IMG/VR virus record: IMGVR_UViG_3300023296_000874
Span: 62,001-126,000 of that record
DNA length: 64,000 nucleotides
Strand: one strand, 5' to 3'
Positions 7,810 through 63,700 of the stretch are shown here, one piece after another. The notes beneath the pieces were generated by a model. The model did no database searches. It had not been told where the DNA came from and saw only the letters and a program-made list of their open reading frames with translations. A program made the position numbers and the translations under genes. How positions within the stretch are numbered: position 1 is the stretch's first letter; each line of letters begins with the position of its first letter.

Positions 7810-8759
7810 TCATCATCCTCATACTTGCCGTCAATGGCCAGCCTGACACCGGACACGGCACCCTCGATAGGGCGGAATTTGTCCTTGTTCTTGAAGTTGG
7901 CGACACGCTGTCCATCTGCGATGTGCGTGACGCCGCGTTGCTGAAGAAGGCAGAACGCCTCCCAGCTTGACCACTCCCACAGGCCTCGGGGCCTGAACAG
8001 CGTGCCGTCTTCCTGCTCGGTGCCCAAAGCAATCCCAAGAGTGTGAGCCCAGCACGTGTCGGTGATCTTGTGCATGATCTGAAGGGCTACGGGCTCTCCC
8101 GCCACCTTGTAGAGCAGATGCATACAATCGTCGGTCCTGAAGTTGTCGAAGGCGTAGGTGTACTGCTTGAAGTTGAGGTTGAAGACGTTCCTCACCTTCC
8201 TTGCCTGACGTGCCCACTCCTTGATGACGTACCATGCCTCCGTGTGCGTGACGTCCTCTACAACCTGGATCACTTCCCGTTCGGGGTTGTCCCTCTTGAA
8301 CTTATTGAGGTCCCGGCGAAGCCTGACGTACTTCTTGCCCGGCATCTCGGTGATGCAGTCGATGGGAATCACGTCCTCGGGCCACACGTTGCGCTCCACG
8401 GAGCCAGCGATGGTGTCGAGGTACGGGAAGAGTGCCTGTCCGGTCTCCTCCGCGAGGTACATGAAGATCAGCTTGTCAGCCTCGTCGCGATAGCGGGCAA
8501 TCCACGCCTTGAGCAGCTCAAGCTGGTCAGGCAGTGGTCCCCAAGAGCGGTAGACGCGGTAGTAGGTCTTCCCCTTGCCACGTTTGATGTGAAACAGCAA
8601 TGCCGCCGTGTCACTCTCGTAGAGATGCGCCTTGAAGGAGCTGTTCGCTCCCAGTGCGTAGGGAGGGCAGTCGTAGTAGCTCAGACTGTCCTCAGGTACG
8701 AGCGAGGCTACACGCGCCGCTGACGCTGGGGTCATGTCTGTCGTCTGAATGTCAGTCAT
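7791..8759 (-). CDS. DUF2156-like double-GNAT protein, copy 1
   Basis: EMPGKKYVRLRRDLNKFKR, YYRVYR, TCWAHTLG, GVTHIADG, K.KFRP. Clear paralog of 6117-7073. Confidence 0.65.
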   Translation of the reverse strand: MTDIQTTDMTPASAARVASLVPEDSLSYYDCPPYALGANSSFKAHLYESDTAALLFHIKRGKGKTYYRVYRSWGPLPDQLELLKAWIARYRDEADKLIFMYLAEETGQALFPYLDTIAGSVERNVWPEDVIPIDCITEMPGKKYVRLRRDLNKFKRDNPEREVIQVVEDVTHTEAWYVIKEWARQARKVRNVFNLNFKQYTYAFDNFRTDDCMHLLYKVAGEPVALQIMHKITDTCWAHTLGIALGTEQEDGTLFRPRGLWEWSSWEAFCLLQQRGVTHIADGQRVANFKNKDKFRPIEGAVSGVRLAIDGKYEDDECLPFQ

Positions 8760-9603
8760 TCATCTTGTCCGGCTGCATGAAGGTTTGCCTCACTCCGATT
8801 ACCCAGAACAAGTCACCTGGCTCGATAAAGGGAATCGATTTCGCTTCATAGATCGGGTCAAGAGCGATACCACGCCAATACGGGTCCTTGTAGGGCTGAT
8901 GGTAGTCGAGAGGAGAGCGAACGAGCGTGACCATGTCCTTCCAATGGGTGTCACGGATGTTGACCATGACGTCGCTGTCAGCTTCTTCCCACATGGAGGA
9001 GTAGTCGTTGGTGATGGGAGCGTACTTTCCAAGCCTGTCGTTGGGGTCTGCGCCCACTACAACGCCGAGCACGGGTACGTCCCACCCAATGTCGAGCAGT
9101 CCGTGGAGAAGGCCGGACAGGCTCATAGCTGAACCCACAGGAATGACGATGCGCTTCGCTTCTCGTGGAAGGTTCGCTGCCTGCCCACGGGTCTGCTGCA
9201 CGGCTTCCCAGCAATCCATTCCGAAGGGGATGTCTGCCCACCCGAGCCTCTTGGCGTCTTCCCGAGCTCGAGAGATGATGACGCTGTTGTAGCCCGCGCG
9301 GTGTTGAACCACCTCAGCTCCAGCGGCCTTGGCAGCGAGTACCTCGGGCGACAATTCACCTTCGGGAGTGTGAACCCTACACGGAATGCCGAGCTTCTGG
9401 GCGATGTGGGCGACGATGTTCACCTGCGGGCTGGATCGGCTACCCGCCGTCACCAAACCCTTCGCTCCTTGAGCGAGGTGCCAACAGGTGCGAACTTTCC
9501 CACCCGGTACTCCTCCTACAATGAACTTGTCGTCGCGCTTGACCCACACATCCCCGTGTTTCTCAACAGGGGTGAGGGCCTTGGGGTCCGTTACATGATC
9601 CAC
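8752..9603 (-). CDS. Fold-type II PLP-dependent enzyme (ACC-deaminase/TrpB-like; phage hypermodification-type)
   Basis: LTPVE...VWVKRDD....GGKVR (PLP lysine), VIPVGSAMSLSG phosphate loop, LDPIYEAK, LFWVIG. Confidence 0.85.
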   Translation of the reverse strand: MDHVTDPKALTPVEKHGDVWVKRDDKFIVGGVPGGKVRTCWHLAQGAKGLVTAGSRSSPQVNIVAHIAQKLGIPCRVHTPEGELSPEVLAAKAAGAEVVQHRAGYNSVIISRAREDAKRLGWADIPFGMDCWEAVQQTRGQAANLPREAKRIVIPVGSAMSLSGLLHGLLDIGWDVPVLGVVVGADPNDRLGKYAPITNDYSSMWEEADSDVMVNIRDTHWKDMVTLVRSPLDYHQPYKDPYWRGIALDPIYEAKSIPFIEPGDLFWVIGVRQTFMQPDKMND

Positions 9604-29044: not shown

Positions 29045-30520
29045 CTACTCGTTTACCAGTGAGTCCCCGATGCCGAGCTCGTCGAGGATGTTGCCATCAT
29101 CATCTTCTGAGTCCACGGGGTTCCGGATTCGGCGCGATTGGAAGTGAACTGAAGCGGTGAATGGCTTGAAGTGGTTGCCGTCTCTGTTCTTTAGACAACC
29201 AATCTTCACTTCGTTGTTATCTCGAAGTTCAGTCGTGTCCCCGAGGAAGGTGTAGGTGATCAGGCTGGCGCTACGTTCTGCCTCGTTTGCCCACGAGAGA
29301 GCGTCGAGCTTGTAGTGCCCCTGGTTCTTGCAGGCTTCCTTCCAACCGTTACGGTTGGCCTGGAAGGGAGTACACACCGGGATACCCTCGCCGTCGTTGA
29401 AGTTCAGCGCCAGCAGGCTGAGGTCCTTCATCACGTAGTTCATAGCCATGGCGAAGTTGTTCACCGAGCGGCCCGTCGAGTTCTCAATGAGTCCGGCGTG
29501 ATCTGCGATGATCAATCCGAGTTCAGCCTTGCGGTGCTCCACTTCAGCCTTCAGCTTCATTTCGGGCACGGTGATCTCGCCAGCGGGGCGCTCAACGATG
29601 ATGCGTCCGTAGTCCTGCGACATCCGGTCCTCAAAGTCAGCCGCCACGTCGCGTAGCAGAGCCTCTTCCTCTCCAGTCAGCTCACCATCACGGAGCCGTC
29701 CGTAGTCGATGTAGCGGGCGTTGCCGGAGCGTGTCCGGAACTTGTCGTGGGTGGAGTGGATGCAGTAGAGGATGCGCCGTACCTGCTCGTACTTCATCTC
29801 GAGGCTGAAGTACATGCAGTTCCATCCGTAGTGGATGGCGGTGTTGTAGGCGTAGTTGAGGGCCAGCGTGGTCTTGAGCTCTCCAACGAACCCCAGCATC
29901 AACATCAGCTCGCCAGGACGTAGTCCCTTGGTGATGTGGTCGATGTTGCTGAGGCCCATGAGCCGTCCGATCTTCGGGTTGGTCTTCTGGAGCTCGTACT
30001 CCTGAAGTACCTCGTCGCCGTCCTCAACGATGTTGCCCTTGAGCTTGCCGTTGCTCTCTACGGTGAGTAGCTCGTCGGCCCCAGCAATGAAGTGCTCAAC
30101 CGCGTCACGCACGCCCTTCTTCAAGGGGCCGCGTTTCTCGAACCTCATGCCGCTGCTCTTGATGACGGCGGTCTCACGGAGCAGGCTGTCGAGCTTGCGC
30201 TGCTTCTGCTCTGCGTAGAGCGTCTTGCACAACCGTCTGAAGTTGGAGCGGATGTAGCCTGAGCCCTCCCGAATCTCCGCAAGACGCTCCGACACATCGG
30301 GTCTCCCCTCAGCCTCGAAGTAGTCAATCACGGATTGGTTGGAGGGCAGCTCGCTCTCACGGCTCTCGCCGAAAAAGTCTTGCACGTACCGGTAGATGTC
30401 TTCGTCCTGCTCCCGTAGGAACTCGATCCCGCTCTCAACGAACTGAAAGTAGTTCGAACGCAGGTTCTCTTGGGACGTACCATCGGCATAGTCAATGAGG
30501 GAGTGGAGGATGCGCTTCAT
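29045..30520 (-). CDS. Replicative DnaB-like (SF4) helicase
   Basis: GLRPGEL, Walker A GFVGELKTT, YFSLEM, IIADH, QANR, KNRDG. Confidence 0.9.
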   Translation of the reverse strand: MKRILHSLIDYADGTSQENLRSNYFQFVESGIEFLREQDEDIYRYVQDFFGESRESELPSNQSVIDYFEAEGRPDVSERLAEIREGSGYIRSNFRRLCKTLYAEQKQRKLDSLLRETAVIKSSGMRFEKRGPLKKGVRDAVEHFIAGADELLTVESNGKLKGNIVEDGDEVLQEYELQKTNPKIGRLMGLSNIDHITKGLRPGELMLMLGFVGELKTTLALNYAYNTAIHYGWNCMYFSLEMKYEQVRRILYCIHSTHDKFRTRSGNARYIDYGRLRDGELTGEEEALLRDVAADFEDRMSQDYGRIIVERPAGEITVPEMKLKAEVEHRKAELGLIIADHAGLIENSTGRSVNNFAMAMNYVMKDLSLLALNFNDGEGIPVCTPFQANRNGWKEACKNQGHYKLDALSWANEAERSASLITYTFLGDTTELRDNNEVKIGCLKNRDGNHFKPFTASVHFQSRRIRNPVDSEDDDGNILDELGIGDSLVNE

Positions 30521-33703: not shown

Positions 33704-33753
33704 ATGGTACTCCGTGTTGTATATCCAACGGAGTACCATTGAGAAAACTCAGA
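33703..33753 (-). promoter_or_regulatory. Class A promoter TCTGAGT-N16-CGTT (33727-33753) with 13-bp RBS-sequestering hairpin
   Basis: tctgagt-tttctcaatggtactc-cgtt; perfect inverted repeat aatggtactccgt/acggagtaccatt. Confidence 0.7.
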
Positions 33754-35035
33754 GCAGTTCTGCCGCCAAAGCCGCCAGAGCACTACGTTCACCCTTGGTG
33801 AGCGTCACGTGTCCTGCCATGGCATGTCCCTTGAACCGCTCAATGACGTACGTCAATCCGTTGCTCAGGCTGTCAACGTAGGGATTGTCGATCTGTGCCG
33901 GGTCACCCGTGAGCACAATCTTGGTCCCTTCGCCAGCGCGCGTGAGGATCGTCTTCACCTCGTGAGGTGTGAGGTTCTGAGCCTCGTCGATGATCATGAA
34001 CTGGTTGGGGATCGAGCGGCCTCGGATGTAGGTCAGAGGCTCTACCTCAACCACCCCGGTGTCAAGCAGGTACTGGTAGTTCTTGCCACCGCGCCCATTG
34101 GCGTCCTTCTTGGTGGATCCAACCATCAGCTCAAGGTTGTCGAAGATCGGCTTCATCCAGGGATTCAGCTTCTCTTCGATGGTGCCCGGCAGGTAGCCGA
34201 GGTCCTTGCCCATGGGGAAGATGGGCCTACTCACCAGCACCTTGCGGTACTTGTGCGCGTCAGCCGTGAGCGCCATTCCTGCGGCCAGAGCAAGTAGCGT
34301 CTTGCCTGTACCAGCGATGCCGCTGATGGTCACGAGGTTGATGTCGGGATTCATCAGGAGGTGGAGAGCGAAGAGCTGCTCCTTGTTGCGCGGGTGAATG
34401 CCCCACACACCTTCATCGTTCTTGGGCAGGAGGTGTAGCTCATCATCCTGAAGCTGAGCGAGGCCGCTCTGCTTCCCGTTCTTCACCAGCACAAACTGGT
34501 TCTCAACCAACCCCTCAAAGTCGTTGGGAAGGAAACAGTCGCGGAACAGACGGTCGACGGTGGCGGTGTCTACATGCACTTCAGCGAAGCCAGTGTAGAG
34601 GCCATCACTCTCGACGCCTACTCCGGCAGTCTGGTAATCCTCCGAGGTCACGCCAATGGCGTCACCCTTGATCCTCATGTTGGTGTCCCGGCTCACGAGA
34701 ATGACGTTGTCGTCGTCCTTGCGGAGGTCCTGGGCTACACGGATGATCTGATTGTCGTTGCTGCTCTCAGCCAATGGGTCGTCAGTGAACGCTACGCGCA
34801 GGGTGCCGCCTCCTGGGAGGTCGACGCCTTCCCTGAGGGATCCCTGCTCGCGAAGTCCATCGAGGAAACGGGATACATACCTTGCGGCGTACCCAATCTC
34901 ACTCATGTCCTTCTTGAAGGTATCGATCTCTTCAATCACCGTCATGGGGATTACAAGATCGTTCTCTTCGAAGCGGCTGAGTGCCGTGTGGTCGTATAGC
35001 AGAACGTTGGTGTCGAGGACGTAGGTTCGCTTCAC
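33749..35035 (-). CDS. phoH: PIN-PhoH (PhoH2/YlaK-type) protein
   Basis: YVLDTNVLL PIN domain, RNKEQ, GIAGTGKT, GYLPG..EEK, YIRGRS, IIDEAQN, GD..QID. Confidence 0.95.
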   Translation of the reverse strand: MKRTYVLDTNVLLYDHTALSRFEENDLVIPMTVIEEIDTFKKDMSEIGYAARYVSRFLDGLREQGSLREGVDLPGGGTLRVAFTDDPLAESSNDNQIIRVAQDLRKDDDNVILVSRDTNMRIKGDAIGVTSEDYQTAGVGVESDGLYTGFAEVHVDTATVDRLFRDCFLPNDFEGLVENQFVLVKNGKQSGLAQLQDDELHLLPKNDEGVWGIHPRNKEQLFALHLLMNPDINLVTISGIAGTGKTLLALAAGMALTADAHKYRKVLVSRPIFPMGKDLGYLPGTIEEKLNPWMKPIFDNLELMVGSTKKDANGRGGKNYQYLLDTGVVEVEPLTYIRGRSIPNQFMIIDEAQNLTPHEVKTILTRAGEGTKIVLTGDPAQIDNPYVDSLSNGLTYVIERFKGHAMAGHVTLTKGERSALAALAAELL

Positions 35036-35135: not shown

Positions 35136-35774
35136 TTAGAACGCGAAGTACCAGCCGAGGGACGGTGTGAACACCGGGGGCGTGATCTCTGCCTCTCCCA
35201 ACTTGAACGGCCAAGTCCACCTCGCATCGATTTCGATACCGCTGTTACGGAAGACGTCAAAGCCCACACCAGCTCCGAAGCTGCGTGCGCCGACGTACGC
35301 ATTGACATTGAACTTGCGGAAGTAGAGGAAGTCCAGCGATACGCCCAGGTCAAACAGACGCATCGGGTCTTCTACAATGTGAGGACTCTCAAGAACCAGC
35401 CAACTGAGCTGAAGCTTGGGTCGCGCGCGGAAGCCTCCCTGGGGCGGCTCCTTCCTCCGCACATCTACATCAACACCAAGCTCAAGCTCTGCGCTGAGCG
35501 TGCCCCAAGTCAACAGGCCCGGAATGAGCTGCGCGCCCGTGCCGTTGCTGTACACTCGGTAGCGTTCATCCGTAGTGATCACTACGGGCTCGCTGAATGT
35601 GATTGTTGGGGTGCCTTCCTCAATGACGGCAAACTCCTCGAGCTTGTCATGCACGTCGGCGTACTGCTCATCCGTGAGGCACACGTAGCCTTCGGGGCAA
35701 TCCACCGGGAGCGGCTCTTGCGCCAAAGCAGGCACAGAGAGGAGGGTCAGTAGAGCAACAAGCAGTAGTCTCAT
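35136..35774 (-). CDS. secreted protein with C-terminal beta-barrel (outer-membrane) signature; spanin-like candidate
   Basis: Sec signal MRLLLVALLTLLSVPALA; amphipathic beta strands ending PSLGWYFAF. Confidence 0.55.
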   Translation of the reverse strand: MRLLLVALLTLLSVPALAQEPLPVDCPEGYVCLTDEQYADVHDKLEEFAVIEEGTPTITFSEPVVITTDERYRVYSNGTGAQLIPGLLTWGTLSAELELGVDVDVRRKEPPQGGFRARPKLQLSWLVLESPHIVEDPMRLFDLGVSLDFLYFRKFNVNAYVGARSFGAGVGFDVFRNSGIEIDARWTWPFKLGEAEITPPVFTPSLGWYFAF

Positions 35775-35823
35775 GTGGTACAGCTTACCGTCGTAGATGG
35801 CGATTGGGAAGTTTCTCGAGGGA

Positions 35824-36381
35824 TCAAGCCCTCGGAGTAGGCAGTCCGTTCAGTAGGTCCCGCGCTGAGTGCTTGGACTCACTATTGGTCTTCACCACGT
35901 ACACCTGCGGGCGTACCTCAATCACACTCTCAACATCCGTGTCCTGAATTCCCGTGGGGAGCTGCACTTCGTGGTCCTTCCCCTCAGCGGTGGTCACTGT
36001 GATGGTTCCCTTGTCACGGAAGGGGTTGGTGGGCGTGGTCCACTCGCGTGTTTCCCACTGCGTCCACCCGTTGTCGTCTGCTTCACCGACAGGGATCTCG
36101 CTGCCATCCTCACGAACGCGCTTGTCGGAGACGGTGTTGGCAGCCGCTACCACACTCTCGGAGCCTTTGGGACGTCCGAACAGGTACTTGAGGATGCCGC
36201 CGATGTTGATGTCGATACCCGACTTGAGCAGCATGAAGCCGCCTACAACCACGAAGATCGCAAGCACCAACGCTACGGGGTAACGAACCAGCCAGGTCAG
36301 AACGGTCTTGAAACCGTTGAGGAGGTTCTGGAAGAAGAGCTTGGTGATGTCACCAAAGGTCGGCTCAGTAGTCTCGGGCAT
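35824..36381 (-). CDS. single-TM inner-membrane protein (i-spanin-like candidate)
   Basis: TM segment YPVALVLAIFVVVGGFML followed by a soluble domain; GGGG RBS before ATG 36381. Confidence 0.5.
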   Translation of the reverse strand: MPETTEPTFGDITKLFFQNLLNGFKTVLTWLVRYPVALVLAIFVVVGGFMLLKSGIDINIGGILKYLFGRPKGSESVVAAANTVSDKRVREDGSEIPVGEADDNGWTQWETREWTTPTNPFRDKGTITVTTAEGKDHEVQLPTGIQDTDVESVIEVRPQVYVVKTNSESKHSARDLLNGLPTPRA

Positions 36382-36389
36382 CTTGCCCC

Positions 36390-38429
36390 CTATCGGCGTC
36401 GGATGTCTGTTGGCATGTCTCGCTTGTTGCCACGAGTGTAGATGTCGGTCAGCCACTTCTTCTGTCGGTCGCTGAGGTCGTCCCAGTTCTTCACACGGCG
36501 GCGCTTCACAAGGCTGTTGATGAACCCTGCCTCGCTACCCGCCCGCATCGTCTGCGTGCAGGAGGTGAAGAACTCATCGAGTGTCATGCGTCCGTTGGTG
36601 GGCGTCTTCGTGAAGCTGCCAGGCGCGGCTACGGGAGCGGCGCTCGAAGCAGAGGCGGGAGCAGTCGGTACCACACTACGGGAGCTGATGCCTCGGAGCC
36701 AACGGAGCTGTCCGGGGCTGAGGTCCTTGATCCTCTTGTACCGGCGCTGCATGTCCTCTACGAACTGTACCTCGCGCTGGGCGCTTGGGTCCTTCAGGCG
36801 GTCAGCTTCCGCAACCAGGTCCTTGTACTCCTGAAGGTCGCGGATATCCTGCTGCTCGGCTGCGGCTGCACGCTTGGCTTCCAGCTTGGCAGCGTCGTCG
36901 TCTGCCTTGGTCTGCTGCTGCTGTGCCGCGCGGGCGTCTGCAATGGCGTCACGGAAGGCGTCTGAGCTACCCATGAGGCGGTTCAGAAGGTCACCGTTCC
37001 GTACCAATGCTTCGGCGGGGACGCTGCATCGCTGGTAGGTGGCGGAGAGGCCGAGGCGCGTGAGGTCGGAGAGCTTGATGTCACCCGCGTCGATGGTGCT
37101 GAACACAGCGGCCTTCAAATCCACCGAGGAGATCGTGGTCACCTTGCGGATGGGGTGGTCGGGTGGAACTGAGCTGCTCCACGAGCTCGCGGGGCGGTAA
37201 TCCCAGCTTGAGCACTTGAGCATGTTGTAGAGCTGAGCGTGTCCGGGGTTTCGGCTGATCCAGTCTCCATAGGTCCACTGCCGGATGAACACGTTGGCGT
37301 CAGTGCTTGGCGCGGTCAGGTTGTGCCTGCGGCCTCCACTGTTGGTGAGCATGGCGTCGATGTTGGTCAGCCGTGCCTCGTAGTCGCTGTACTGCTCATC
37401 TACGATGTGGATCGTTGCTTCCTTCCACTCGTCGATGTACCCCTTGAGGCGGGTACGGTTTCCCACTTCCTTCTTCATGGTGGCGAAGTGGGAGATCACA
37501 TCCCCTTCCACGTCGCTTTGCTTGTCCTCAAGGTCATCAATCTGGCCCTGAATGAAGTTGCGGTACTCACGGAGGATGAGGTCGTATGCCTGCGTAGGCG
37601 TGCCGTACTGCAAGAGCAGTCGGAGCTGCGTCTCGTACTCAACGAAGAGCTGAAGCTTCTTCTCGTCGCTCACCTTCACCCGGTCGATCTTCTGCTTCCT
37701 ACGAATCTTGTCGGGGATTTCCTTCACCAACGTAGTCCTGTAGGTGTCTTCCATCACGCGGCGCATGACGCTCACGTTCCGTACCCACTTGGCGAAGGAG
37801 TCAGAGAGCTGGAACCCCGCCACGCGGCGGAAGGTAGCGAGCTTCGCCTGGAACTCGCCAATGTCGAATCCGTTGGGGAGGTCAGCCTGAAGGGTCTTCA
37901 GCGAGGCGAAGATGGCGTCCTGTCGGTCCCACACGTCAAGGGTGGTGGCATCAACGGCATCGAAGCGCCTGTCCTGCAACCGGGCACGCAACCTGTTGAG
38001 GTAGATGTTCAGTTCCTGCTTGGTGAACCCGCTGAGGACCACGTAGGTCAGGATGCAAGAGGAGCCCAGAACCATCGTGTGATGGTTGAGCTTGTTCTCG
38101 ATCTGGAAGTGGTAGACGATCGGGTTGTGTCCACAGAGCTCGCACTTGCCGTTGCTCTCTGCCCACTGCTTCTTCAGCGCCCACTCCATCTTCGCATCGT
38201 CGTAGGAGTCAGCGTTGGAAACGGCAATCAGGCTGCGCTTCTGCTTCTCTTCAAAGCCTGAGCCTGATGCACCATCGAGGGCAGCGGAGAGGTCGTCAAC
38301 GGCGCTCTCAAGTTCTGCGACCGTGTCGAGGTCGCTGTCGTTACGGAAAGACATTCCCTTCTTAGACCCAGGCTGAGCCGGGTCCGTGCGAAAGAAAAGC
38401 ATCTCATCACGAGCAAATCGAAGAGCCAT
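36390..38429 (-). CDS. 679-aa hypothetical protein with CxxC-H-C zinc motif and two C-terminal helical repeats
   Basis: CELCGHNPIVYHF...LGSSCI; repeats E..F...M......LS..Q..WL..I; class B motif upstream. Confidence 0.7.
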   Translation of the reverse strand: MALRFARDEMLFFRTDPAQPGSKKGMSFRNDSDLDTVAELESAVDDLSAALDGASGSGFEEKQKRSLIAVSNADSYDDAKMEWALKKQWAESNGKCELCGHNPIVYHFQIENKLNHHTMVLGSSCILTYVVLSGFTKQELNIYLNRLRARLQDRRFDAVDATTLDVWDRQDAIFASLKTLQADLPNGFDIGEFQAKLATFRRVAGFQLSDSFAKWVRNVSVMRRVMEDTYRTTLVKEIPDKIRRKQKIDRVKVSDEKKLQLFVEYETQLRLLLQYGTPTQAYDLILREYRNFIQGQIDDLEDKQSDVEGDVISHFATMKKEVGNRTRLKGYIDEWKEATIHIVDEQYSDYEARLTNIDAMLTNSGGRRHNLTAPSTDANVFIRQWTYGDWISRNPGHAQLYNMLKCSSWDYRPASSWSSSVPPDHPIRKVTTISSVDLKAAVFSTIDAGDIKLSDLTRLGLSATYQRCSVPAEALVRNGDLLNRLMGSSDAFRDAIADARAAQQQQTKADDDAAKLEAKRAAAAEQQDIRDLQEYKDLVAEADRLKDPSAQREVQFVEDMQRRYKRIKDLSPGQLRWLRGISSRSVVPTAPASASSAAPVAAPGSFTKTPTNGRMTLDEFFTSCTQTMRAGSEAGFINSLVKRRRVKNWDDLSDRQKKWLTDIYTRGNKRDMPTDIRRR

Positions 38430-38494: not shown

Positions 38495-39247
38495 CTACGG
38501 AGTATCGCCCCAAGGAGGAGCATCACCAACGGTAGGCTGCGTCTCTCCAATCACCATGCCGGGATCGGTACGCTCGTCTACGGGCTCCATGGCGTCGTCT
38601 GGCAAGTCGAACGGTACGTCCCGCCCCGGTGCCCCACCACCGCCACTAAAGCCGCCTCCGTAGCCACCACCGCCGCCTCCACCACCTGGGAGGCTAAAGC
38701 CCCCAGCGTTCTTGCTGCTCCAGGAATCAATGAACGCCTTCATGGGCTCAGTGAACTTGGTTCCGAGGTTGTAAGCCAGCAGTCCAAGGTTGGTCAGGAA
38801 CAGCATGGATAGCACGCCAAGGTACAGCGTAGCAAGCGGGCTGTTCACGTCCTGAGAGGTACGCAGCGAAACCATCGCCATCACACACATCGTGAGGAAC
38901 GTCACCATCGTGAGCCAGAAGCTCACACGTCCAAGGCTGACCTTCCACCTGCCGTCCTTGCTCTTCTCATAGAACAGAGGGGCAATGCGGTCAAACCTCT
39001 TTCGAGGACGGTGTTCAGCACCCGCACCGGGTCCGTCGATGTCGTTGTGGTCGTCGAAATGGAGCGGTGACTCTCGACGCGCGGTGATGACCGGGGCGCG
39101 AGAAGTTGTCGCTCGGGGAGCTGACAACTGTTGACGTGTCTTCTTCACCGCGAAGACCACGGCGAGTACTACAAGAAGGATGAGTGCGGAAACCAGGCCG
39201 GTTCCAAGCCAGGGCACACCGAACAGATCCCAGTGGATAAAGTCCAT
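38495..39247 (-). CDS. putative holin (3 TM helices)
   Basis: Three hydrophobic segments, E..DG...SLGRV.F motif, directly downstream of the endolysin. Confidence 0.55.
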   Translation of the reverse strand: MDFIHWDLFGVPWLGTGLVSALILLVVLAVVFAVKKTRQQLSAPRATTSRAPVITARRESPLHFDDHNDIDGPGAGAEHRPRKRFDRIAPLFYEKSKDGRWKVSLGRVSFWLTMVTFLTMCVMAMVSLRTSQDVNSPLATLYLGVLSMLFLTNLGLLAYNLGTKFTEPMKAFIDSWSSKNAGGFSLPGGGGGGGGYGGGFSGGGGAPGRDVPFDLPDDAMEPVDERTDPGMVIGETQPTVGDAPPWGDTP

Positions 39248-44892: not shown

Positions 44893-45510
44893 TCAGGTCC
44901 GCCACAGCACAGCGTAGTACCCGAGGTACAAATCACGAGCTGTCGTGTTGGTGAACCGTAGGCGAAGATTGGTGCTCGGGTTCGAAGAGGTGAACGCCGT
45001 CTGGTCCGTGATGGTGTCCCAGTTGGAGCCGTTGTCTGTAGAAGCTTCAACCTTGATGGCTGAGGACGCTTCCTCAACGTACTGAGCCTGCGTGTCGTTG
45101 GCTTGTCCCATTGCGTAGGTCAGGCTGTAGACACTGAAGTATGGCACAAGCTGCACGGGCGTCCCGCCCATTGCTACGGCCTTGGTAGTGAGCTCTCCAT
45201 CACTGGTGCCCTGAGCCTTCACCATCCACTCGTAGGCACCAACCTCGGCACGGTGCGAACCGACGGTGTCGTCCACCTTCGTCGCGTTGTCGAGTTCGTT
45301 GTACTCGATGTTGGGGAAGTCCGGGTAGAACGCTACCAACTCAGCCTGCTTCGCAGTCTTGAGGTCGGCATAGGTCGCCGGAGTGTCGATGGCAAACCCG
45401 TCAGGCAGGTCCACAAGGAACAGCCCGGTGACAGAGAAGTTCACGTCGCCCACGAAGGGGTGGACGATGCTCTCGTCGAACTTGCTGATCAGAAAGTGCA
45501 GGCTACTCAT
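44893..45510 (-). CDS. tail structural protein (beta-sandwich)
   Basis: S.DNG.NW...LRLRF pattern; located in the tail operon. Confidence 0.6.
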   Translation of the reverse strand: MSSLHFLISKFDESIVHPFVGDVNFSVTGLFLVDLPDGFAIDTPATYADLKTAKQAELVAFYPDFPNIEYNELDNATKVDDTVGSHRAEVGAYEWMVKAQGTSDGELTTKAVAMGGTPVQLVPYFSVYSLTYAMGQANDTQAQYVEEASSAIKVEASTDNGSNWDTITDQTAFTSSNPSTNLRLRFTNTTARDLYLGYYAVLWRT

Positions 45511-60741: not shown

Positions 60742-63700
60742 TCAGAAATCGTTGCCGTACTCATCGCCCGTGCCGGTGTAGGTCATCTGCACCTGGCCGA
60801 GTGTGAGGTACTCCATCACGAAAGCCTCAATGTCACCCGTGCCGCTCTCGCCATCAACGATGTAGGAAGCCGCCCAGGTGTGGTCCTCAGGCGTTTCTCC
60901 CTTCGGCAAACTCACCAACACGCGGTTCGCTGTCACAATGCCAGCATCCAACAGCAAACCGCCCAGGCCGCAGTCACATACGTCGAAGCCCAAACGTCCA
61001 ACGATCAGAGCGGAGCCGGGGTTGCTCTCCAGCTCGCAGAAGTCGCTCTCAAGCTCAAACAGCGTCATCGGCTGGTCGTCCATGAAGACGCCACGGTGAA
61101 GTGTGTTGGGTCCTCCACCCGTTGAGGTGTTGAAGGTGAGCTGCTGGTTGATGAGCCACACGTCCGCTTCCTGTCCCTCAACTACCTTTGTGGAGTCGGA
61201 GTCCAGAGCGTCACGGAGGATCAGGGAGCCGTCGCTCTTGTGCATCAGGGTGAGTGGGAGCACCACGTAGCTCACCTCATTCACTTCCTCGATGGCGTGG
61301 ATCACATCCGATTGGTGCAGATCCTCTCCAATCTGGAGACGGTTCACGAGGTGGGAGAGGTTGGTGCGGATGTCAATGTCCACGTCCGCCTGATCTGCAT
61401 TGTCCTTGAGCACTACGGTCGCCGAGATCTCCACCTCGTTCTCAATGCTCTGCTTCACCAGCACATCCGCCGTCACATGCCGCATCACGTCCACCTTGGC
61501 GGCTACGAGCTGGAGCACGTTGTTCACGGAGTAGGATACGGTGAAGTTCTCCTCAGCCGTGTAGGCCACAATCACCTTCTCACCGTTGAGAATGGTGCCT
61601 GACTCGTTGCGGGCGATCTTCGGAGCCGTGGTTAGGTCTCCTCCGGTGAGGAACACGTCGGGTGTTGCAGAATCCCCCTGGTCGGTGGTGTAGGTGACGG
61701 TGCCCGCCGTGTTGGTGATCACGATGGTCGTCTCGTCGACGCCTACAGATCCGAGCTTGACGGAGGTGCTGCCTACGAGCACTACACCCTCGTCCGTCAC
61801 CGTGGTCGGGTCGCCTGTGGGAACCCCGTTCGCCTGTACCACGTTGATCTGGTCGCTGGCCTCAACGGAGTAGCCGAACAGGAGTGGGTCTTCGGTCTTG
61901 CTGAGCGAGTAGTTCTCCGTGGTCAACGTGCTTGCAGAGCTTGTGATGCCGGAGATATCTCGGATGGGTTGCACTACGGGCTCGAACGGATCGCTGTCCC
62001 GGTACTTGTAGTCGCCGATGAGGATGTCATCTTCATCCACATCAGGCTGAGGAATGTTCACGTCAAGCTGGATGGTGCGGTAGTCCGTGATCGTCACGCC
62101 GCTCAGGTCAAAGTCCTGTCCCGTAGAAGTGTTCCTCAGCCCGTAGCCCAAGGAAGCATCGTTCAGCATGGCGAAGATCGGAGTGGCCTCGGTCACTGCG
62201 GCAGAAGTCGTCCGGAAGGTCAGGAGCGAGGCCTCGCCCACTGCTTCAAAACGCACGTTGAGGTCTTGGAGGTACTGGAAGGCAAAGGTCTCCTGCACCT
62301 CGATGATTGCCGTGCCCTGGATCCAGAGGTCCACCTTGCCGCCGATGTGCTTCTCACGTACATCGTCCCAGTCCCGCATCATCAGGCTCTCACCCGCTTC
62401 CTCAACACGGGCGCGGTGTACGCCGGAGGTGTCAAGTGCCGTGCGGAGGTAGCCTCCTGAGGTGCCACGGTCCACACTGACGTAGGAGAGCATGGCTCGC
62501 TCAGCGAGACTGAGGTTGCTCTCCTGATCCTGTCCAAAGGTGGTGGCCTCGTTGTTGACGACACTGCTGAACCCGGAGGCTGAGGTAGATGTGATGGCTC
62601 CCGCCGCCACGTTTCCCGTCGCCCCTGCGGTCACGGCAGAGATGGAGACGGTCAGCTCGTAGAAGCCCGTGTTCGCGTTGAAATACGAGCTACCATTGGC
62701 CGCTGACATGGTCTTGCTCGCAGAGGTCACGAAACTCTGCGAGCTGGTGCCCGCAGCGCTATCTCCTCGGCTTGTCAGTGTGGTGCCCGCATCCACAACC
62801 AAGTCCTTACTCGGGGCCGACGTCCGGCGCATGACGGCCTGTCCGATGGCCTTGGTTGCTCCCATACGCTCAGTGAGCGAGTTCATGGCGAGCTTGGTGA
62901 ACGTCTCGTCGATGAGCGTCTGCACCTCAGCTTCGGTCAGAGCTACCGCAAGGGCGAGTGCCTGCTTGTAGTTCGATTCCTTGTAGGCGATGCTGGTGCC
63001 CGTCTGCTGAGGGTCATCGATCTGAATGAGCGTCAGGAAGCTCTGGGCTCGGCTCATGAAGTCGATGAGCAGCCAGATGCGGTTCATCTCCCACGCGGGC
63101 GGGTCTACGTGGATGTCACGGGTCACTGAGCCGGGGCGCACATCGATGTTCGACTGAACCCTGAGGATCTCGGTGATGAGTCCCTGCTGGATGGTGTTCA
63201 GGTTGCGGGGCGTGAGGTCCTTGACCCGCGTGCTCAGCACCAACGGCAGTCCTACAAGCTCACTCGAGAAGGTGCTCTCGTACTCAATGGCCAGGCTTGG
63301 GTCGTAGGCCAATGCCGTAGCGACGTAGTAGATCTCCTGGGTCAGTGCGATAGGGCTGAACAGAGCCTGCGCCGCATCCTGCTGCGGGTAGTCCGTCGCT
63401 GTGGAGTCGTTGGCGCGGACGTGGTTGAAGGCGTACACGTAGAACTTGTTCAGGGTCTGAACGTTGATGCTCGTGTCGATGATGACGTTGCTGTCGTCTG
63501 GGTCCACTTCTCGGTCGGTGGTTTCCACCGTGGACACTACCTTCTCCACCACCTCTTTGTAGTCATCTACGAGGCGGGTGTTGAGCAGTGTGTAGCCCGC
63601 AAGTCCGCCACCCGGCTCGGAAGCTGAGTAGAAGTTGAATCCTACGGTCATCGTGTCGCGCTCTACATCAGCGAGCAGCACGTCCTCAATGTGGGTAGCC

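Follow-up and report, generated by a model that had tools for sequence, protein, structure and literature searches.

We describe a conserved gene pair in the genome of an uncultured jumbo phage from a salt lake (IMG/VR record IMGVR_UViG_3300023296_000874, 257 kb, with about 19% of the genome missing), located in a window of 64,000 nucleotides that spans positions 62,001 to 126,000 of that record. The two genes, here called B and A, lie on the minus strand and encode a single-pass membrane protein and a small exported protein predicted to sit in the outer membrane as a beta-barrel (features and coordinates within the window in Table 1). A starts 49 bp after B. The signal peptide of A has one Arg and a 15-residue hydrophobic core and is followed by QEP, and the first Cys is residue 26. 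The first-pass annotation had described a single-TM protein and a Sec-exported protein without a lipobox, ending in LGWYFAF, downstream of an endolysin and a holin, and this observation is confirmed. Its description of the neighboring genes, however, needs correction, as the "endolysin" is an M15/VanY-type peptidase, the "holin" has no family match, and a 679-aa protein lies between the latter and B, such that the pair is not directly adjacent to the putative holin.

Table 1. Predicted features of the B-A locus (window positions, all on the minus strand)
Position	Strand	Feature	Basis
35136..35774	-	Gene A, 212-aa exported protein: Sec signal peptide, periplasmic head and C-terminal six-strand barrel-type domain ending in LGWYFAF	ORF and sequence; family of 97 clusters; AlphaFold2 model (pLDDT 91.7); outer-membrane-barrel neighbors in structure searches
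35718..35774	-	A residues 1-19, Sec (signal peptidase I) signal peptide with an A-L-A site before Q; no lipobox Cys	Sequence; recurs across the family
35439..35717	-	A residues 20-112, periplasmic head with a C-x5-C pair (CPEGYVC), an amphipathic helix at 35-53 and short strands at 57-99	Model secondary structure; C26 and C32 invariant in close relatives; second Cys pair at positions ~52 and 91 in many relatives
35139..35438	-	A residues 113-212, six long amphipathic beta strands (113-126, 141-152, 155-162, 165-173, 178-187, 202-211), the predicted membrane barrel unit with a C-terminal beta-signal	Model; alignment columns; structure searches
35824..36381	-	Gene B (ATG at 36381), 185-aa single-pass inner-membrane protein, partner of A: W-L-V-R-Y-P at the start of the TM, an amphipathic N-I-G-G-x-L-x-x-L-F-G segment after it, and a ~120-aa beta/Pro-rich domain ending in D-L-L-x-x-L-P	Sequence; fused to A in at least nine 50% clusters
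36226..36282	-	B residues 34-52, transmembrane helix	Kyte-Doolittle 19-residue mean of 2.53
36390..38429	-	679-aa protein of unknown function between the 3-TM protein and B, without a membrane segment; probably not a core part of the module	Conserved only in the closest relatives
38495..39247	-	250-aa protein with three membrane segments and a Gly-rich tail; holin candidate by position only	46% identical to the 229-aa protein at the same place in locus L002
39285..40019	-	244-aa M15/VanY-type peptidase with a C-terminal PG_binding_1 domain and no signal peptide; endolysin candidate	Weak family scores; metal-site motifs

A and B were searched against Pfam, PHROG, NCBIfam and PADLOC, and neither matches any family, with no Pfam or PHROG hit for B at E <= 0.1; the B-A fusions described below likewise gave nothing in NCBIfam and PADLOC. 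Profile searches of A and B against PDB sequences returned nothing significant, and an ESM Atlas search with B gave no usable hit. A belongs to a family of 97 clusters found only in uncultured phages. No match was found by tblastn of A (cyanophages included), or of the fusions P0033 and P0066, against 50,697 isolated-phage records, and a search of viral and metagenome contigs with an alignment of close relatives of A, or with P0033, found no relatives. The signal peptide recurs across the family, and only 6 of 103 members have anything lipobox-like.

A structural model of A predicted with AlphaFold2 from 78 sequences consists of a periplasmic helix-plus-sheet head followed by six strands of 8-14 residues; a run with only 7 sequences had been poor (pLDDT 59). 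Across the 78 aligned sequences, alternating columns of the strands show a conserved polar, charged and Gly-rich face (R116, R118, K120, D142, E148, G167, G171, D173, G183, G207) and a variable hydrophobic face, as judged from column statistics and not from the coordinates of the model. Aromatic residues sit at strand ends, and the terminal G-x-x-F-x-F is conserved, with Gly at 207 in 82%, an aromatic residue at 210 in 68% and Phe at 212 in 83%. This is the signature of an outer-membrane barrel. Six predicted strands fall short of the eight of a self-sufficient barrel, so A probably needs to oligomerize. The hairpin at residues 84-105 has a variable charged face and in many relatives is disulfide-linked to the head, so it is probably periplasmic.

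Structure searches place A closest to a designed soluble six-strand barrel (9xzt; Z 9.1, rmsd 2.4 over 79 residues), then to a designed TM barrel, PagL, CarO, NspA, OmpW, OmpA and TamA (Z 4-6 for PagL, NspA, OmpW, OmpA and TamA). Foldseek found no significant match in the PDB. Neighbors in the ESM Atlas are OMP_b-brl, OmpA_membrane and PagL clusters along with unnamed phage clusters, and neighbors in BFVD are phage proteins annotated as outer-membrane beta-barrels. A itself has no match to PF13505 (OMP_b-brl) or related Pfam families, and two of 78 relatives hit OMP_b-brl weakly (best E 4.4e-4). It remains possible, though unlikely, that the C-terminal domain of A is instead a soluble six-strand barrel in the periplasm and that the soluble domain of B is cytoplasmic, in which case the two would never touch and their function would be unrelated to bridging. 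The best structural match is a soluble protein, and no natural outer-membrane barrel with six strands has been solved. However, a conserved polar face and a variable hydrophobic face are the reverse of a soluble core, and the aromatic girdles, the conserved terminal Phe, the strand lengths and the dominance of outer-membrane barrel families among the weaker structural and language-model neighbors also argue against this reading.

Comparison of the loci of relatives (numbered L002 to L018) shows that B precedes A in every locus where the upstream gene could be read: the window, L002-L006, L008 and L013. Homology to B was shown by sequence in L002, L005, L008 and L013, and further loci have a 145-242-aa gene in the same position; stop and start often overlap. 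The two genes overlap or abut in L008 and L013 and are separated by one 140-aa gene in L002 and L005. The relatives examined range in GC content from 36 to 59%. At least nine 50% clusters (P0033, P0045, P0055, P0066, P0067, P0070, P0074, P0080 and P0082) encode B-A as one protein, and P0033 and P0070 are seamless fusions, homologous to the B of the window (E 8e-9 and 2e-12, respectively), with P0033 also homologous to A (E 3e-22). Consequently, B and A are considered partners. A complex prediction of A(20-212) with B(56-185) from purpose-built alignments gave scores of 0.39, 0.01 and 0.00, which count neither for nor against binding.

B has no hydrophobic segment other than its transmembrane helix. 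Across 16 homologs there are more K/R before this helix than after it, which favors an N-in/C-out orientation. The seamless fusions P0033 and P0070 require this orientation, and they have no second hydrophobic segment, so their B and A parts must share a compartment. In contrast, seven fusion clusters keep a fully hydrophobic, signal-peptide-like segment between B and A, which, with B oriented N-in, would strand A in the cytoplasm; this is simplest if the domain of B is cytoplasmic. By composition alone, residues 70-185 of B are 6.9% Pro, 6.9% Gly and 26.7% V/I/T, with only 34.5% helix-favoring residues, and thus do not resemble a helical or coiled-coil domain.

The M15/VanY-type peptidase, located 3.5 kb upstream of the pair, is the only cell-wall hydrolase detected in the 257-kb record, and no SLT, phage lysozyme or Amidase_2 was found elsewhere. 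Its family scores are weak (VanY E 4.8e-5; 24-25 bits in a six-frame search), but the S-x-H-x-x-G-x-A-x-D and W-H-F-E metal-site motifs are present. Unrelated small multi-TM proteins sit just upstream of B in L008 and L009, and these and the 3-TM protein of the window are not detectably related to one another. The fusion P0033, found in an unrelated temperate phage, starts behind a GGAGG site inside the 3' end of a GH25 endolysin gene (PHROG endolysin E 2.5e-30). That gene follows a partial TM-containing ORF and precedes a serine integrase, which is the classical holin-endolysin-spanin order, although this lysis-cassette context rests on one contig.

The presence of canonical spanins elsewhere had been named beforehand as grounds for rejecting a spanin role, and none was found in the 257-kb record. 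Six-frame searches gave no match to Rz (PF03245) or Rz1 (PF06085), and no ORF with a lipobox lies next to or inside a gene for a type-II membrane protein. A lipobox scan of all ORFs found lipoproteins at genome positions 180739, 185993 and 194315, none of which lies next to a type-II membrane protein with a periplasmic helical domain or has a C-terminal TM. A weak Rz-like candidate, a 104-aa TM plus helical protein at genome positions 8571-8885 (60.9% helix-favoring residues), has only unspecific Rz-like scores, and its neighbor lacks a lipobox.

In the window, the pair lies at the end of the tail-gene block, after a 1584-aa protein (PHROG tail spike E 2.6e-20) with a baseplate wedge gene further up. 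Similarly, in all huge-phage relatives the pair lies directly after giant tail-spike and tail-fiber genes, and in most relatives (L007-L009, L013, L017 and L018) no endolysin lies near it, the constant neighbors being giant tail-fiber-like proteins and the replication genes. This context fits just as well the alternative raised by the first-pass annotation, Lom/Ail-like superinfection exclusion, in which A, inserted in the outer membrane of the infected cell and with B as an inner-membrane helper, would block or hide the receptor or DNA entry route used by the same or competing phages, as do lambda Lom, T5 Llp and the Cor proteins. The lom, llp and cor genes sit directly after tail-spike and tail-fiber genes, and, like A, their products are phage-encoded and Sec-exported, with an outer-membrane location that is predicted for A. 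A preprint on huge-phage outer-membrane proteins proposes this role and cites Lom binding LamB (10.64898/2026.10.24.761521). Nevertheless, we regard exclusion as unlikely overall. The pair is conserved by sequence across phages of very different GC content, which presumably have different hosts and receptors, whereas exclusion genes are usually sporadic. The predicted external loops of A are very short (2 residues, ~3-14 residues and 14 residues), leaving little surface for receptor binding and suggesting an outer-membrane anchor rather than a surface binder. Lom is a self-sufficient eight-strand barrel with long external loops and no inner-membrane partner, and Llp and Cor are lipoproteins or small proteins; an obligatory inner-membrane partner, and fusion to it, is not a feature of Lom, Llp or Cor. 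A has six predicted strands, minimal loops, no Ail_Lom profile match, and is genetically coupled or fused to B. P0033 also lies after an endolysin and not after a tail fiber.

An equally unlikely alternative is a trans-envelope tether or conduit with a non-lytic role, such as a TonB/TolA-like energy or contact link, a site holding the membranes together during replication and assembly of a very large virion, or a route for export or import during infection. B has a TonB-like layout, with an N-terminal anchor carrying a conserved motif, a Pro-containing spacer and a C-terminal beta domain, and the pair behaves as a core gene set of a whole clade of 250-480-kb phages, at a fixed position between the tail and replication modules. 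The fusions are also taken to show that a single chain can reach both membranes. However, no similarity to TonB, TolA, Lpt, Tam or secretin families was found in Pfam, NCBIfam or PDB sequence searches, no ExbBD-like or ATPase partner lies next to the pair, and the one context outside huge phages is a lysis cassette.

The best explanation, held tentatively and at less than even confidence, is that B and A are the two halves of one trans-envelope module with a spanin-like role. In this view, B is inserted in the inner membrane by its N-terminal helix (N-in) and extends a beta- and proline-rich domain of ~130 residues into the periplasm. A would be exported by Sec, its N-terminal Cys pair oxidized in the periplasm, and its six-strand unit inserted into the outer membrane by the BAM machinery, probably as a dimer or trimer closing a 12- or 18-strand barrel, with its head remaining in the periplasm to meet the C-terminal end of B. 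The pair, or the single fused chain, would link the two membranes through the cell-wall meshwork, and once the holin has released the M15 endolysin and the wall is degraded, the tethers would be free to cluster and pull the membranes together, breaking or fusing the outer membrane and releasing the virions. The sequence features, the family and its confinement to uncultured phage records, the conserved gene order, the fusions, the lysis-cassette position of one fusion and the absence of canonical spanins in this record rest directly on the analysis, while outer-membrane insertion, oligomerization, contact between B and A, the orientation of B and the role in lysis are inferred. The interpretation of the first-pass annotation, a two-component spanin with a beta-barrel outer-membrane subunit, is therefore partly supported; its inference of a diderm host is reasonable but indirect. 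Against a spanin role, there is no sequence or profile similarity of the pair to any spanin family, membrane fusion driven from a beta-barrel anchor has no precedent, and the 679-aa or 140-aa genes can interrupt the cluster.

Like two-component spanins (lambda Rz/Rz1 and their many families), the pair consists of an inner-membrane protein with one N-terminal helix, followed by a gene for an exported protein predicted to be targeted to the outer membrane, in a tight or overlapping arrangement, with conserved periplasmic cysteines and with one homolog directly after an endolysin gene. It differs in that the outer component has no lipid anchor and is 193 residues of beta structure with a barrel-type C-terminus, not a proline-rich lipoprotein of 40-60 residues, and in that the predicted periplasmic part of the inner component is beta/Pro-rich by composition and not coiled coil. 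Spanin families are, however, diverse in fold, more than 120 i-spanins have no coiled coil, and periplasmic Cys residues matter (PMC6139136). P0033 and P0070 resemble the unimolecular spanin of phage T1 (gp11), described by Kongari et al. (PMC6139136), as single chains with one predicted end in each membrane and a beta-rich periplasmic middle, but with reversed polarity: the fusions have an N-terminal inner-membrane helix and a C-terminal barrel unit, where gp11 has an N-terminal lipoyl-Cys and a C-terminal transmembrane helix. The architecture of A, a signal peptide plus six strands, is the same as that of the six-stranded outer-membrane-like proteins of huge phages (IPR056410/"DUF680" type), for which a dimer has been modeled as a 12-strand barrel (10.64898/2026.10.24.761521); a Pfam scan of A and 78 relatives, in a library not confirmed to include that entry's model, found nothing beyond the two weak OMP_b-brl hits, and in the portion of the preprint consulted we found no inner-membrane partner, fusions or lysis context described. 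Disruptin (phage phiKT gp28) is likewise an alternative for the outer-membrane step of lysis in a phage without spanin genes, but it is a small cationic amphipathic peptide that acts directly on the outer membrane and not a membrane-anchored two-part bridge (bioRxiv 10.1101/515445).

About 15% of phages of Gram-negative hosts have no recognizable spanin, and so far only one alternative, the cationic peptide, has been worked out (bioRxiv 10.1101/515445). A further possibility, more speculative than the spanin-like role itself, is that B-A defines a third structural class of spanin, with an integral, BAM-inserted beta-barrel unit in place of a lipoprotein, existing both as two genes and as a single chain of polarity opposite to the T1 u-spanin, widespread in uncultured huge phages (250-480 kb) and present in at least one temperate phage. 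The barrel unit would then be a natural six-strand protomer that closes only by oligomerization, and clustering of tethers after wall degradation could be coupled directly to barrel assembly or rearrangement in the outer membrane. A barrel-anchored bridge would be a new answer to how the outer membrane is breached, would extend spanin annotation to many huge phages that currently appear to lack spanins, and would raise the question of how an integral beta-barrel could take part in membrane rupture or fusion. Even if the function proves to be exclusion or tethering, there remain a conserved, sometimes fused, pair of predicted inner- and outer-membrane proteins, a candidate natural six-strand barrel protomer, and a marker for diderm hosts in a large clade of uncultured jumbo phages.

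A promoter and terminator scan and folding of the 100-bp gap after A gave nothing above shuffled controls, and no RNA run covers the region. By blastn, the 8-kb region gave only a 137-bp match in the PhoH region. A search with the tRNA-synthetase-like gene of the phage, made to infer the host, found nothing, and the only hints as to the host are the salt-lake habitat and a weak Myxococcota label on the ESM Atlas neighbors of A.

The window occupies bases 62001-126000 of a 257.5-kb IMG/VR virus record that is rated 81% complete by CheckV, has a G+C content of 59%, and recurs in many salt-lake metagenomes. No tRNA was detected in the window. Genes A and B lie in a long run of minus-strand genes, preceded in order by a baseplate-wedge homologue, a 1584-aa tail-spike homologue, a 205-aa protein, a 1610-aa protein, a 244-aa M15/VanY peptidase with a PG_binding_1 domain, a 250-aa protein with three membrane segments, and a 679-aa protein of unknown function. 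B and A follow, and after A come a PIN-PhoH protein, a 176-aa protein, an SNF2 helicase, DnaB and a family-A DNA polymerase. The 679-aa protein, wedged between the three-segment membrane protein and B, is conserved only in the closest relatives (L002 and L005) and has a Cys cluster near the N-terminus, a long charged helical middle and a C-terminal D-L-S-x-x-Q-x-x-W-L motif that occurs twice; by analogy with the cytoplasmic lysis regulator in the phiKZ cassette (PMC12894885), it could be a regulator. The PIN-PhoH protein, a PIN domain fused to a PhoH-like ATPase (PF13638, E 1.3e-32; PF02562, E 4e-50) directly downstream of A, is absent at this position in L002 and L005, which have a lysine/glutamate-rich 419-475-aa protein instead. 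Coordinates of the features are listed in the table.

Coordinates of the gene pair and of other features in the window, in the whole record (G000:C1) and in loci (L numbers) from this record and other phages
Feature	Sequence	Coordinates	Strand	Length
Gene A	window	35136-35774	-	212 aa
Gene B	window	35824-36381	-	185 aa (from the ATG)
Protein of unknown function	window	36390-38429	-	679 aa
PIN-PhoH protein	window	33749-35035	-	
DnaB	window	29045-30520		
Protein between the giant tail-fibre-like proteins	window	44893-45510	-	~205 aa
Its homologues	L002; L007; L009	1745-2368; 4965-5573; 4340-4951		
TM-plus-helix protein	G000:C1 (outside the window)	8571-8885		104 aa
The same protein with its overlapping Sec-signal neighbour	G000:C1 (L010:1571-2289)	8571-9289		104 and 135 aa
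Three predicted lipoproteins	G000:C1 (outside the window; L011, L012)	180739-181737, 185993-186301, 194315-194539		
Aminoacyl-tRNA-synthetase-like gene	G000:C1 (L014)	191579-193189		
Intein-bearing DnaB genes	L007; L017	13594-16227; 13141-15885		
N-terminus of the B-A fusion P0033	L016	729-830		

The first-pass annotation had described a single-TM protein and a Sec-exported protein without a lipobox, and this observation was confirmed. A begins with a Sec signal peptide that ends A-L-A before QEP, has no lipobox, carries the pair CPEGYVC at residues 26-32, and ends in LGWYFAF, while B has one strong hydrophobic helix at residues 34-52. Neither protein matches any Pfam, PHROG, NCBIfam or PADLOC family, or any solved structure by sequence, and neither A nor its fused relatives match any of 50,697 isolated-phage records. 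A word-based search found six close relatives of A, and a profile search of 1.84 billion cluster representatives found 97 clusters, 51 of them at E <= 1e-10. Nearly all are about 200 aa with a signal peptide, usually one or two Cys pairs, and C-termini of the types Y-F-A-F, S-F-N, F-D-F or L-W. One distant hit (P0085, 843 aa) matches the barrel-hairpin part of the A profile in six separate stretches, suggesting a protein built from repeated copies of the barrel unit.

With a 78-sequence alignment, AlphaFold2 gave a model of A (pLDDT 91.7, pTM 0.63) with a helix at 35-53, short strands at 57-99, and six long strands between 113 and 211. Column statistics show strict alternation through the six strands, with one face conserved and polar or glycine (R116, R118, K120, D142, E148, N156, N158, G167, G171, D173, G183, G207), the other face variable and hydrophobic, and aromatic residues concentrated at strand ends (W113/F115, Y151/Y152, W188, F210, F212). 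This is the pattern of a membrane barrel with a polar lumen and the opposite of a soluble core. Exhaustive structural alignment to 48,161 PDB chains placed a designed six-strand barrel first (9xzt, Z 9.1, rmsd 2.4 over 79 residues), followed by a designed transmembrane barrel, PagL, a Dot/Icm porin, CarO, OmpU, TamA, NspA, OmpW and OmpA at Z 4-6, values that are in the unspecific range. As 9xzt is soluble (PMC12478100), A could instead be a soluble barrel, with the B domain in the cytoplasm, although we consider this the least likely of the readings. The ESM Atlas placed A next to unnamed phage clusters and to OMP_b-brl, OmpA_membrane and PagL clusters, BFVD returned an uncharacterized 324-aa phage protein (E 5e-5) and then phage proteins annotated as outer-membrane barrels, and Foldseek found no significant match in the PDB. 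If the C-terminus is periplasmic, as in all known barrels, the external loops are 14, 2 and about 3-14 residues, so that very little is exposed. Six strands cannot close a normal membrane barrel alone, and an oligomer is therefore expected; a 2026 preprint reports six-strand barrel-like proteins in aquatic huge phages and models a dimer as a 12-strand barrel (10.64898/2026.10.24.761521). Overall, A is likely to be an exported protein of the outer-membrane-barrel type.

B precedes A in every locus where the neighboring gene could be read. Close relatives include a 478-kb contig, L002-L006, where a non-conserved 140-aa gene sits between B and A. In L008 the two genes abut, in L013 (a 322-kb contig with 36% GC) the 142-aa upstream protein has B's motifs, and four further loci, including 458-kb and 382-kb contigs, have a 145-242-aa gene in the same position. 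In the huge phages the neighborhood is invariant, with giant tail-fibre-like proteins, then B and A, then SNF2, DnaB, primase and PolA. A conserved protein with weak F5/8 type C (discoidin) hits always sits between the two giant tail-fibre-like proteins in the window, L002, L007 and L009, and may be a fibre-associated carbohydrate-binding or assembly protein. At least nine 50% clusters encode B and A as one chain. Seven of these keep A's signal-peptide-like segment in the middle, while two, P0070 and P0033, join B's domain seamlessly to A's head with no second hydrophobic segment. BLASTP confirms homology of these two to the window's B (P0033, E 8e-9; P0070, E 2e-12) and of P0033 to A (E 3e-22). 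Consequently, in the seamless fusions B's domain and A must lie in the same compartment, and one chain then carries an inner-membrane helix at one end and a barrel-type C-terminus at the other. The helix of P0033 ends in L-G-W-S-C, which resembles the unusual A-W-A-C lipobox verified for PB1-type u-spanins (PMC6139136), and could be a lipoprotein signal rather than a plain anchor. We regard B and A as functional partners with high confidence, and consider it more likely than not that they bridge the envelope; a tether or conduit with a non-lytic role appears unlikely.

Across 16 homologues of B, the N-terminal flank of the helix carries more K/R than the C-terminal flank, and one homologue has seven K/R and no acidic residue before the helix, which favors an N-in, C-out orientation. 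The seven fusions that retain the signal-like segment do not fit this orientation. The segment is at least as hydrophobic as real signal peptides of the family (11-residue maximum of 2.7-3.3 against a mean of 2.4), with K/R before it and Q-D/E-C after it, and with B oriented N-in it should stop transfer and leave A inside the cell. This may be explained by an internal start codon, for which L009 (a locus from a related huge phage) has a weak ribosome-binding site before an in-frame ATG, by failure of a short proline-containing segment to stop transfer, or by a cytoplasmic B domain in those lineages.

The strongest clue to function comes from outside the huge phages. P0033 lies on a 10.7-kb contig (L016, 58% GC), where its GTG start sits 4 nt after a GGAGGG site and inside the last 40 nt of a GH25 muramidase gene (PHROG endolysin, E 2.5e-30), which in turn overlaps the end of a partial ORF with a membrane segment. 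Right after P0033, on the other strand, lies a large serine integrase (E 3e-83). This order, read as holin, endolysin and then a periplasm-spanning protein at the end of a temperate phage genome, is where spanins are found. In the window, the pair lies 3.5 kb downstream of the only cell-wall hydrolase detected in 257 kb, where VanY was found but SLT, phage lysozyme and Amidase_2 were not. That enzyme has the M15 metal-site motifs and no export signal, so it would need a holin. The next gene encodes the protein with three membrane segments, and unrelated small multi-TM proteins precede B in L008 and L009, much as non-homologous holins replace each other.

A canonical spanin elsewhere in the record would have spoken against the reading proposed in the first-pass annotation, but no Rz or Rz1 profile match was found, and no lipobox ORF is paired with a type-II membrane protein. 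A protein with an N-terminal TM and a helical, coiled-coil-like tail, outside the window, scores weakly and unspecifically against Rz-like PHROGs. It is overlapped (ATGA) by a gene for a Sec-signal protein without a lipobox, making a second inner-membrane plus exported pair in the same phage, and no lysis gene is nearby. Three predicted lipoproteins, of which one is 332 aa with three MopE-type metal-binding motifs (PF11617, E 2.5e-19) and long acidic runs and one is 74 aa and almost entirely poly-Asp repeats, indicate that the phage uses the host lipoprotein pathway, but none of them looks like a spanin. Spanin families differ widely in fold, with more than 120 i-spanins lacking coiled coils, a beta-rich T1 u-spanin, and periplasmic cysteines that matter (Kongari et al., PMC6139136), and the non-helical composition of B therefore does not exclude a spanin role.

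The interpretation of the pair as a two-component spanin without a lipoprotein, as the first-pass annotation had proposed, is only partly supported. There is no homology to any spanin, other genes can interrupt the cluster, the lysis-cassette context rests on one contig, a complex prediction gave no verdict, and no mechanism is known by which a barrel anchor could drive membrane rupture. In most relatives no endolysin lies near the pair, and the constant neighbor is the tail-fibre block, where exclusion genes such as lom, llp and cor also sit; superinfection exclusion or receptor masking thus remains as an alternative, although an unlikely one. The sequence features, the conserved gene order, the fusions and the position of P0033 are direct observations, whereas outer-membrane insertion, oligomerization, the orientation of B, bridging of the envelope and any part in lysis are inferred. 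A role of the bridge in the outer-membrane step of lysis is our preferred reading, but a tentative one. Neither protein can be filed in a known spanin or barrel family, as there is no lipobox, no profile match and only six strands, yet what the pair is inferred to work like is closest to a spanin.

Elsewhere in the record, a class-I aminoacyl-tRNA-synthetase-like gene (HIGH-type motif) has no close relative in 185,579 reference genomes by a pattern scan, and so gave no clue to the host. The DnaB helicase genes of two related huge phages (L007 and L017) carry inteins with LAGLIDADG homing-endonuclease domains, while the window's DnaB does not.
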